Shown: positions 42,528 to 45,410 of the stretch, one piece after another
Position numbering within the stretch: position 1 is the stretch's first letter
Layout of the letters: every line of letters begins with the position of its first letter
Origin: Dimorphilus gyrociliatus
Lineage: Eukaryota > Animalia > Annelida
NCBI GenBank assembly: GCA_904063045.1
Contig: CAJFCJ010000019.1
Coordinates: 1,168,570-1,232,569, forward strand
Length of the DNA stretch: 64,000 bases
Direction of reading: 5' to 3'
Made by a program: the position numbers and the translations under genes
The notes under the pieces: model-generated
What the model saw: only the letters and a program-made list of their open reading frames with translations
What the model was told of the DNA's origin: nothing
Databases searched by the model: none

Positions 42528-44228
42528 AGGTAAGGCAAATAGTTATAAACATAGCATAAAGTGCAAATGATCTAAATGCCTTAGATACGTTAATTTTGCT
42601 TATTGGCTGAACTTCAATACTTGTTGGCTTTGTTTAAAAAAAACAAAAAGAATATTAAGCTAATGTACAATGTACATAATGTAGTATTATCTAATAAATA
42701 TAATTGACAATATGAAATGCAGTGTTTATTATTTCGGTGAAATAAAAACGAAAATATAATAAAATAATAAACTACAAAGAAAATTATTGTATTGTTTATT
42801 CAATTGTTATTATTCGGTTTTTGCACATAATTTATATTTCTCATTATACTATTATATAATTAGAAAGAAATACTTAATATATGTATATATATACATAAGA
42901 AATTAATAGATATAGACTCTATATCTCATATACAGTATTTGAGTATACAATCCAATTATTAAAATTTATTATACATTAATCTGCAAAAACGTCAATTTTA
43001 TTTGACGTTTAGTACTTGGAAATAAATTACTAACGATGATATGAGTAAGAAATGCTAGTTATTCTCCCCGATTTAAGAAGATAAAGGGAAGCATGAGAGG
43101 AAGTAATAGGAAAAATAAAGGAAAAACTTTAACCCATTCATACAATTGCATTGGGGCATAATTTGATTAAAAGTTCAGATAATTTAATCTCTATAACACT
43201 TAATACGATAAATCTTGTCGAAAGATAATTATAAACCCTTAAAATAACATTAATAATAGTAAATATCGCTAATATCCAAATAATAAAAGCATAAATATAC
43301 TATGCTCTGACATTATCTATGCTCTGAATTTTATACAGACATATTAGCTTTCTGATCAGATACTGCAGATAAGATATCTCATTGGATAAGGAAACCTTCT
43401 ATCAACTAAAATGACAGTTGCGAAGCAATGCACCAAAGTCTTAAAAATGAAAGAGGGAGAGAAAGAGAGCATGAAAGAGAGAGAGAGAATCTAAATGAGA
43501 AAGAAAAAAAATCTGCCAGAGAAAAGACATAATACAAATAATAATAAGTCATATATTAAGTATTTGAAATTGTCTTACATTGATAAACGTAAGTTTTATT
43601 ATTTATTTCATTATTTAAATTTATTTAAGGATTTCCGTAATTATAATTGGTTTTCTTCCCTTAAAAAGAAGCGTTAAATTTTATTGATTCTTTCCTCCTA
43701 TTTATTAACCTTTTGGTAAAGAATTTATGTTCTTTTTACCAAAGTTAATAATTTTTTCGTTCTTTTGTTATCTAAGAGAAGAAATACTTAGATTTCTTCT
43801 TCTTCTTTTCTTTTCTTTTTTTTTTCGCATAAATATCTCTTTATCTTATACTTTTTGCGTGTTATTCTTACTAAGAAGGAGCTATATCGTTTGTTTTCTT
43901 TATATTTCGTTCTCTTTCTTTATATAAGAGTTTTATCTATAAGAGATGAAACTGCTAAGGGAATACTTTTCGTCGCAATTTAGGAATAAGAACCATCGAT
44001 TTTATAATTCTTCTTTTAAGAGTATTTAAGAGTTGTTTCAATCTTACATTGATATTTTGTGCATTGTTAATGATATTCTGTATATACTTTCGTTAAGTTT
44101 TCTCAATCGGTTATTTAATTTAAAGTAATTTAAAAATTTAAGCCGTGTTCCCTTTTGTATTTGGCGCTCCTAACGTCTAACGTGTAATTGCTGCCGCGTT
44201 ATATTCCGGTTTTTTTTTTTACATTTCT

Positions 44229-44276
44229 CGCGCATGCGCATGAATAAAATTTTCTGAGGGGCCTCTTCCTTTTCCG
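44229..44276 (+). promoter_or_regulatory. Ribosomal-protein promoter: NRF1-like palindrome plus polypyrimidine TCT initiator / 5'TOP
   Basis: CGCGCATGCGCA at 44229-44240; CTCTTCCTTTTCC about 20-33 nt before the RPL10A ATG. Confidence 0.7.
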
Positions 44277-44295
44277 GTTTGATCAATCAGCCAAC

Positions 44296-45410
44296 ATGAG
44301 GTACGTGAAGAAATCTTTTAAAATCTTCGTTTATCTGTGCAATAATTTGTTGAGAGTTGTTCTAAATTGAAGAACAAGTTCTTAAATAACATTCTGCCAG
44401 AAATAATCCAAAAAATCCACATGATTTTCAATTTTTAATGATATATTTTTTGATGACAGCAAGATTAGCAAAGACTCGCTTCTCGAAAGTCTCAACACTG
44501 TATTGAAGAGGTCCCAGGAGAAACCTCGTAAATTCACCGAGACAATTGAACTCCAAATTTCTTTGAAGAACTATGATCCCCAAAAGGATAAGCGTTTTTC
44601 GGGAACCGTCAAGTAATGGAATTTACATTTGTCTTTTACCTCTGAAAGTCAGAGGAAGCTGAAATGTCAGCGGACCTGTACCCAGGGTCTTAAAATAATT
44701 GGGGAGGTCGCAAAACGATTTATCGTTTTGTCACCAAACATTGTAGGCGAAAAATTTGCGTTAATAATTGCGTTAAACTTGTGTAATACGACATTCTTAT
44801 TACTGTTTAAGTAGTATATAGTGAATAACGATTCACAACTAATACATATTTATCGTTTTTAGGCTAAAGCACGTTCCTCGTCCCAAGCTCAACATCTGTG
44901 TATTGGGAGATGCCCAGCATATTGATGAAGCTACTGCTAACAACATCCCAGCCATGGATGTTGACTCATTGAAAAAATTGAATAAAAACAAAAAGTTGGT
45001 TAAGAAGTTGGCCAAGAAATACGATGGTTTCTTAGCATCTGATTCTTTGATCAAGCAGATTCCAAGAATCTTGGGACCCGGATTAAACAAAGCCGGTAAA
45101 TTCCCTACTATGTTGTCCCATAGTGAATCTATGGCTAACAAAGTTGCTGAACAAAAAGCCACTATTCGTTTCCAAATGAAAAAGGTAAGCAACACTAGTT
45201 CTTTAAGAGATAAACAGTTGATGCCATTTTTCTTTCCAGGTTCTTTGCTTGGCAGTCGCTGTCGGCAATGTTTCCATGGCACCAGAAGATTTGTTGTCTA
45301 ATACCAATATGGCCATCAACTTTTTGGTATCTTTGTTGAAGAAAAACTGGCAAAACGTTAGAGCTTTGTACATCAAGTCTACAATGGGTCCCTCTTTACG
45401 TATCTATTAA
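44296..45410 (+). CDS. RPL10A: 60S ribosomal protein L10a (uL1), 4 exons
   Basis: ATG AG|...[25 protein letters not shown]|LKH...[33 protein letters not shown]...QMKK|VLCLAVAVG...[17 protein letters not shown]. Confidence 0.98.
44639..44742 (+). ncRNA. Structured intronic RNA element in RPL10A intron 2 (candidate uL1 autoregulatory element; snoRNA less likely)
   Basis: Four consecutive hairpins (CCTCTGA/TCAGAGG, GCTGA/TCAGC, GACCTG/CAGGGTC, CAAAACGA/TCGTTTTG) followed by a second possible donor GTAGGC at 44743. Confidence 0.5.

Follow-up and report, generated by a model that had tools for sequence, protein, structure and literature searches.

The closest described counterpart of the locus analysed here is the feedback loop of ribosomal protein L10a (uL1), in which the protein binds a 39-40-nt element (L10ARE) located between two alternative 5' splice sites (donors) of its own pre-mRNA and switches the choice between them, as published for C. 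elegans and human cells (PMC4937301). The original prediction for this locus, which invoked L10a autoregulation through an element placed between alternative donors, was correct on this point. The L10a-responsive intron was defined by Takei et al. (2016) as the one interrupting the C. elegans Arg53 codon between its second and third bases, and of the ribosomal protein genes subject to unproductive splicing, that of L10a was reported to be the only one whose orthologous introns share a conserved stretch between nematode, fly and vertebrates (PMC4937301). Other loops of a similar kind, in which a protein in surplus targets its own pre-mRNA, giving a product that is degraded, are those of C. elegans rpl-3, rpl-7a, rpl-12 and further genes, human RPL3 and yeast RPL30. 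Proteins of the same family are also autoregulated in bacteria and archaea, through an L1 operator in the transcript of the L11/L1 operon, and both this operator and rRNA helices H77-H78 combine a short duplex with a GA linker and with a hairpin that opens with GG(C/U), a combination likewise seen in the element described below (PMC5689012). The L10ARE differs from the bacterial and archaeal operator in that it acts on splicing and not on translation.

In the window, the 64,000-nt stretch of Dimorphilus gyrociliatus DNA that was analysed, a four-exon RPL10A gene was identified on the + strand at positions 44296-45410. Its exons occupy 44296-44300 (the coding part of exon 1, ATG AG, with the same ATGAG/GT in the orthologous locus of a sister species, L001), 44460-44612 (exon 2, read in frame from 44461, its last two bases forming the start of codon 53), 44863-45184 (exon 3) and 45240-45410 (exon 4, 88% identical to the sister species and ending in a TAA stop at 45408-45410). 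Exon 3 alone was used as the query of a protein search, which retrieved Pfam Ribosomal_L1 relatives with E values down to 1.7e-55. Intron 2 (GTAATG...TTTTTAG) follows the GTVK codons and spans 44613-44862, the coordinates and the length of 250 nt being as originally proposed. Codon 53 is split AA/G after GTV, at 44612/44863, and this phase-2 position, in the codon equivalent to C. elegans Arg53, was common to every locus fetched for comparison. As Takei et al. (PMC4937301) defined the L10a-responsive intron by exactly the same position, the original statement that the alternatively spliced intron of vertebrate RPL10A lies at this position was right. Translation through intron 2 yields ...GTVK followed directly by an in-frame TAA (44614-44616), which confirmed the AAG-TAA stop anticipated upon bypass of the proximal donor. 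Isoforms retaining the 5' part of the intron would therefore be unproductive, and the locus in this respect shares the premature stop of the alternative isoforms that characterizes the L10ARE class.

Within intron 2, positions 44669-44708 (+ strand) were found to be identical to C. elegans at 31 of 40 aligned positions when compared, as the original prediction had proposed, with the published L10a-responsive elements. The C. elegans counterpart begins 46 nt into rpl-1 intron 1 and is taken here, from its sequence, as the L10ARE itself. The segment 44669-44735 is very probably the D. gyrociliatus ortholog of the uL1 regulatory element L10ARE together with an adjoining hairpin, and a role in feedback is proposed for it. 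The gene, the intron position and the core are those of the C. elegans rpl-1 and vertebrate RPL10A systems, as are the location of the element tens of nucleotides past the productive donor and the stop encountered if that donor is skipped. The core occurs only once in the 78-Mb genome, even with up to 2 mismatches allowed. The annelid L10ARE is a previously unreported instance that extends the known RPL10A feedback loop to annelids, although such an instance was to be expected, as the element was already known from nematodes, fly and vertebrates.

Conservation was assessed by comparison with the sister-species locus, which was located on Logan contigs through the exon-3 search and encodes a protein 91% identical to that of D. 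gyrociliatus. The first 136 nt of intron 2 were identical at 128 positions (94%), in contrast to 75 of 123 (61%) in the rest of the intron, 64% upstream of the gene, 62% in intron 1, 82-88% in the exons, 67% in intron 3, 58% downstream and 53% (37/70) at fourfold sites; for these figures the junction of exon 1 with intron 1 had been placed a base too far to the right, with slight effect. Against the background level of conservation, the 5' block of intron 2 gave a binomial P below 1e-11, and the comparison of sequences thus indicates that the element is under strong purifying selection. Both substitutions within the core preserve pairs of its nested fold, one changing G-U to A-U in the helix termed S2 below and the other G-C to G-U in an outer helix, while in the hairpin following the core (P3, the fourth stem) the stem was kept and the loop altered. 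The conserved block, which ends at 44736-44748 in the sister-species alignment, much exceeds the L10ARE, as it takes in the initial 25 nt of the intron and two further hairpins (A and P0). In its length of 136 nt and its two extra hairpins it differs from the C. elegans and vertebrate elements, and P3 is also longer, at 30 nt compared with 13 nt in the known L10ARE.

To place the annelid element in a broader context, the orthologous introns of C. elegans (L068), the sea star Acanthaster (L069), insect L007, termite and two further loci (L009 and L028) were fetched, the termite introns being derived from termite-gut metagenome contigs and evidently representing host termite DNA. A single core architecture was seen in the annelids, the nematode, the insects, the sea star, L009 and L028, consisting of GGACC/GGUCY, a 5-bp helix, a GA linker and a hairpin. 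Read from its 5' end, the core comprises the first strand of S1 (GGACC, invariant), a loop, L1, of four bases of which only the final A is constant, the first strand of S2 (CYCAR), the second strand of S1 (GGUCY, in which only the last base varies), an A-rich and variable loop, L3, of 7-10 nt, the second strand of S2 (YUGRG), the linker (GA in six of eight lineages, CA in L007 and UA in L028) and the P3 hairpin, whose position is fixed while its stems differ. In the window these pieces correspond to S1 at 44672-44676 (GGACC) and 44686-44690 (GGUCU), S2 at 44681-44685 (CCCAG) and 44699-44703 (UUGGG), the linker at 44704-44705 and P3 at 44706-44735, the last combining the fourth stem of the original prediction with a basal GGU/ACC. 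Across 16 aligned sequences, made up of 10 RPL10A-intron cores and six cores from the short interspersed elements (SINEs) described below, 16 columns were invariant.

The two strands of S2, which close a conserved 13-nt loop, were found to covary. Pairs were formed in 97.5% of the S1 and S2 cells of the alignment (A2), as opposed to 10-62% when the partners were slid, and the covariation score was higher than that of all 500 shuffles. At one position of S2, nine sequences have a C-G pair and six a U-A pair, and the closing pair is G-C, G-U or A-U. Since SINE copies belonging to a single family account for five of the six U-A rows, there are few independent events, namely those of L007 and of the SINE lineage together with several one-sided changes, including one in the termites. 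S1 never varies (it is invariant in 16 of 16 sequences), and covariation is consequently uninformative for or against its pairing. In eight of nine sequences a hairpin of the P3 type opens with the base that directly follows the GA; the stems are unrelated, and their basal bases are GGC/GCC, GGU/ACC or GAU/GUC depending on the sequence. The examination of relatives for covariation, suggested in the original prediction, thus provided support from both S2 and the hairpin that follows the GA. Upstream of the core, a CAGGGAGY motif with a hairpin was present in four lineages; a candidate pairing between the upstream CAGG and CCUG in the core was rejected, being broken in C. elegans and the sea star. 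The covariation-backed model of S2, GA and P3 and the upstream GGGAG motif are what is new with respect to the 2016 paper.

Some of the individual loci showed features of their own. Acanthaster contains two tandem copies of the element (L069:3757-3806 and L069:3832-3876), each with its own P3 hairpin. In L009 (2920-2960) the element begins only 15 nt into a 103-nt intron whose productive 5' splice site would lie within a hairpin of 4 bp (CCGU/ACGG). An RPL10A-like copy of the octocoral Xenia (L067:3860-4000) has an intron of about 105 nt at the same codon position in which the element was absent, which indicates that the L10ARE system is not universal in animals. The upstream exon of this Xenia copy has an apparent frameshift and may reflect a pseudogene or an assembly error.

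The packing of four stems downstream of the normal donor, as originally described, was reproduced by folding, the stems lying at 44639-44655, 44658-44671, 44672-44709 and 44706-44735 of the + strand. Intron 2 as a whole folds with z = -3.5 and its conserved part (44636-44748) with z = -4.0, none of 200 shuffles of the latter being as stable. The first of the predicted stems, hairpin A (7 bp with a 3-nt loop), is identical in the sister species, and no clear counterpart of it was seen in the other phyla. The second, hairpin P0 (5 bp), abuts the core on its 5' side, and by eye a hairpin of different sequence could be recognized at the same place in termite, insect L007 and C. elegans. The minimum-free-energy and centroid structures of 44636-44748 differ in their treatment of S1, at nearly equal energies: S1 and S2 together would form an H-type pseudoknot, while the rival pairing encloses S2 in a nested outer helix, formed by 44673-44677 and 44705-44709.

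Towards the 3' end of the intron, the GTGAAT/ATTCAC hairpin that had been described as abutting the branch point is present at 44821-44836, beside the branch-point-like ACTAAT (44838-44843), but its sequence is not conserved. An unrelated 6-bp hairpin is found in the sister species (L001 ~2920-2941) shortly before a branch-point-like CTAAY, and the occurrence of a 6-bp hairpin before the putative branch point in both annelids may represent either structural conservation or chance in AT-rich sequence. The intron also contains an exact 12-nt direct repeat (44718-44729 and 44848-44859), of which copy 1 forms the fourth stem's 3' arm and copy 2 covers the polypyrimidine tract, so that the 5' arm of the fourth stem could pair with either place. 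Ten bases of this repeat recur next to the L1 stalk of the 28S rRNA encoded by the genome itself. The repeat was rejected as a conserved feature, since the sister species keeps neither copy.

The candidate distal donor of the original prediction, GTAGGC, is indeed present at 44743, near the 3' end of the conserved block, but reads ATAGGC in the sister species and is thus not conserved. Other candidates on the + strand (44760-44816) are GTTAAT at 44760, GTTAAA at 44772, GTGTAA/GTAATA at 44781/44783 and GTAGTA at 44811, the GTs of which are aligned in the sister species. Sequence comparison revealed no strong consensus donor 3' of the element in either annelid, only weak GT sites, and this lack of a strong nearby distal donor distinguishes the annelid locus from the C. 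elegans and vertebrate systems, as does the fact that regulation is here predicted from sequence. In C. elegans, termite, insect L007 and the sea star, a good GT donor is located 27-75 nt beyond P3. Furthermore, the NCBI isoform X2 proteins of sea star, sea urchin, sea cucumber and the brachiopod Lingula begin with an intron-derived peptide and join the main form at the next exon, and the sea star X2 peptide was mapped together with its GTAAGA donor, at L069:3919, 43 nt 3' of the element. An RPL10A isoform using a distal donor in D. gyrociliatus is, however, an unproven candidate. Two GCGTTA/GCGTAA boxes were observed 3' of the conserved block in both annelids (44755-44775 of the window and L001 ~2858-2885). 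One box, ATTGCGTTA, is complementary at eight of nine positions to bases 2-10 of the intron, and by virtue of this complementarity it could mask the productive donor or be a weak donor itself.

By analogy with the experiments in C. elegans and human cells, from which binding of uL1, the switch of splice site and decay are all extrapolated to the annelid, the following sequence of events is proposed. Free uL1 in excess of that used in ribosome assembly would bind this structured part of its own pre-mRNA, and use of the productive donor (44613) would become less favoured. Splicing would move to a weaker downstream donor, or intron 2 would be retained, and retention would expose the same AAG-TAA stop as use of a distal donor. 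The resulting message, carrying the stop at 44614-44616, would be subject to nonsense-mediated decay, leading to the production of less uL1.

A pattern drawn from the cores of three phyla was also scanned over metagenome contigs, for which about four chance matches were expected, a rough figure derived from the size of the collection. The scan returned 57 loci, comprising 14 RPL10A introns (of which L022 is on the same contig as L009), five chance matches in bacterial coding sequence and 38 copies of repeats headed by a tRNA. The latter, about 38 tRNA-derived SINE loci among L010-L066, lie on invertebrate-associated contigs (e.g., L035:2084-2400, L038:739-880 and L057:1700-1950) and fall into two subfamilies with about 150 nt of body in common. 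The body further on shows an apparent resemblance to the Deu/Nin-DC superfamily. In these copies an L10ARE core of about 37 nt, including a compensated S2 and the GA, directly follows the tRNA-like head, and 10 of the 12 SINE bases outside the search pattern are those of the annelid. Past the GA, similarity between SINE and element was not significant, the best P value being 0.011 among 20 tests. The central domains of SINE superfamilies (V/Vhc, Deu, Nin-DC, Inv and Meta) are likewise short modules that are shared across phyla and have a predicted stem-loop (PMC4758252, PMC4824008), and the function of conserved central domains has been stated as unknown (PMC4824008). The element in the window differs from them in being a single-copy intronic sequence and not a SINE. 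A literature search found no paper linking L10a to SINE domains, and searching with strings of the SINE sequence returned nothing relevant.

The presence of the ~37-nt core at the head of a SINE body raised the alternative that the core in the intron was left behind by an old SINE insertion and has no function today. This is considered very improbable, as the 94% identity of the block stands against a neutral 53-67%, the element occupies the same intron in several phyla, no tRNA head was found at 44300-45000, only one copy exists in the genome and the similarity to the SINEs stops at the GA. Introns of ribosomal protein genes are frequent hosts of snoRNAs, and the hairpins could therefore belong to a small RNA gene within intron 2, whether a snoRNA, a mirtron or another type; two CUGA motifs and one ACA do occur in this intron. 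The original prediction had named a snoRNA as the alternative to be scanned for. A search of the whole window against Rfam at gathering scores gave no match, however, and relaxing the threshold to E values up to 10 produced two chance-level matches (E 1 and 3) located in the unconserved 3' half. The intron lacks a C box, the sister species has AAA in place of the ACA at 44738, ARAGORN detected no tRNA-like gene at 44300-45000, and the conserved part is the L10ARE ortholog. The snoRNA alternative was accordingly rejected, and a small RNA gene of any kind is regarded as almost certainly not the source of the conserved structure.

A third alternative concerns the ligand. The conserved structure might act on the splicing or stability of RPL10A RNA through another factor, or through RNA folding alone, with uL1 not being bound at all. 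The annelid block is far larger than the L10ARE, extending to hairpin A, hairpin P0 and the 25 nt with which the intron begins, the two alternative folds are nearly equal in energy, and binding of uL1 in this annelid is a prediction, all of which would be compatible with such a scheme. The core, on the other hand, is what the annelid has in common with the species for which binding by L10a and switching dependent on it have been demonstrated, and uL1 is itself highly conserved. An action independent of uL1 is therefore held to be improbable, and feedback by uL1 through the L10ARE ortholog is the preferred reading.

Within the uL1 feedback reading, and as a refinement that does not exclude it, the element may imitate the rRNA binding site of uL1, a possibility that is put forward tentatively and is rather doubted. 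Structurally, the core L1 site has a short duplex, P1 (H77), joined by the linker J1-2 to the base of hairpin P2 (H78), together with a strand J2-1, and domain I of L1 contacts P1, J1-2 and the base of P2 (PMC5689012, which summarizes the operator and rRNA site work of Nikulin 2003 and Nevskaya 2005). In the model considered here, S2 would represent helix 77, the GA the linker between H77 and H78, and P3 helix 78, in a circularly permuted form in which a loop caps the far end of S2 and the junction has its second strand open. The 28S L1 stalk of the genome itself indeed contains AUAAGUGGGAG. This 28S has GUGG-GA-GCC(UUCG)GGC followed by CCAC after 12 nt, to which UUGGG-GA-GGU...ACC of the intron and YUGGG-GA-GGC...GCC of other phyla may be compared. 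The succession of helix, GA and hairpin would correspond to the surface of P1, J1-2 and the base of P2 that is contacted by domain I (PMC5689012), and the duplex, linker and P2-like hairpin of a uL1 site can be recognized in S2, GA and P3. The CAGGGAGY motif and hairpin found upstream in four lineages also have GGGAGC in common with the rRNA junction.

Several observations weigh against imitation of the rRNA. Takei et al. found the sequence and predicted structure of the L10ARE to be unrelated to the L1 stalk (PMC4937301), although the stretch that they considered was only 39 nt long and cut P3 in half. A J2-1 strand that runs, in nested topology, from P2 to the 3' strand of P1 was not found in the element: the partner strand of S2 lies on the 5' side, which leaves J2-1 unclosed, and P3 is followed by a free tail. 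Two lineages have CA or UA as the linker, and the likeness is drawn from sequence and predicted fold and not from three-dimensional structure. Thus, relative to H77-H78 of rRNA, the element has a permuted topology and an open second junction strand, and its similarity in sequence is at chance level. Upon local alignment of the element with the genome's own stalk, the best match was an unconserved 10-mer that was equalled in 31 of 2000 shuffles; this 10-nt match, to the flank of the stalk, was rejected because it falls in the unconserved stretch of the 12-nt repeat. The segment that had been picked out for its resemblance to the 28S L1 stalk scored below even this chance-level 10-mer, and its GGGGAGG run is mostly one strand of the covarying helix and not an rRNA-like string that is conserved, an insect having UUGAGCAGG instead. 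The claim of mimicry hence failed at the level of sequence likeness and survives as a structural hypothesis of helix, GA and hairpin, which reopens the question of whether eukaryotic uL1 recognizes its pre-mRNA in the way that it does rRNA.

Combining the structural model with the SINE data leads to a further and more speculative proposal, which we consider unlikely as a whole yet worth stating. According to this proposal, the functional unit would be larger than the published 39 nt, its covarying helix, GA and hairpin would form a permuted mimic of H77-GA-H78, and its core would have been captured or donated by an ancient tRNA-derived SINE whose RNAs bind uL1. If true, the SINE central domain would gain a concrete ligand in uL1, as Alu has in SRP9/14, and because the core is shared, the function of the central domain could be addressed by a single binding assay.

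Outside the intron, the promoter and 5' leader of the gene (44228-44295) are conserved with the sister species. The conserved promoter region contains an NRF1-like palindrome, GCGCATGCGC, at 44230-44239, and a pyrimidine-rich, TOP-like tract at 44260-44295 reaches the RPL10A start codon.
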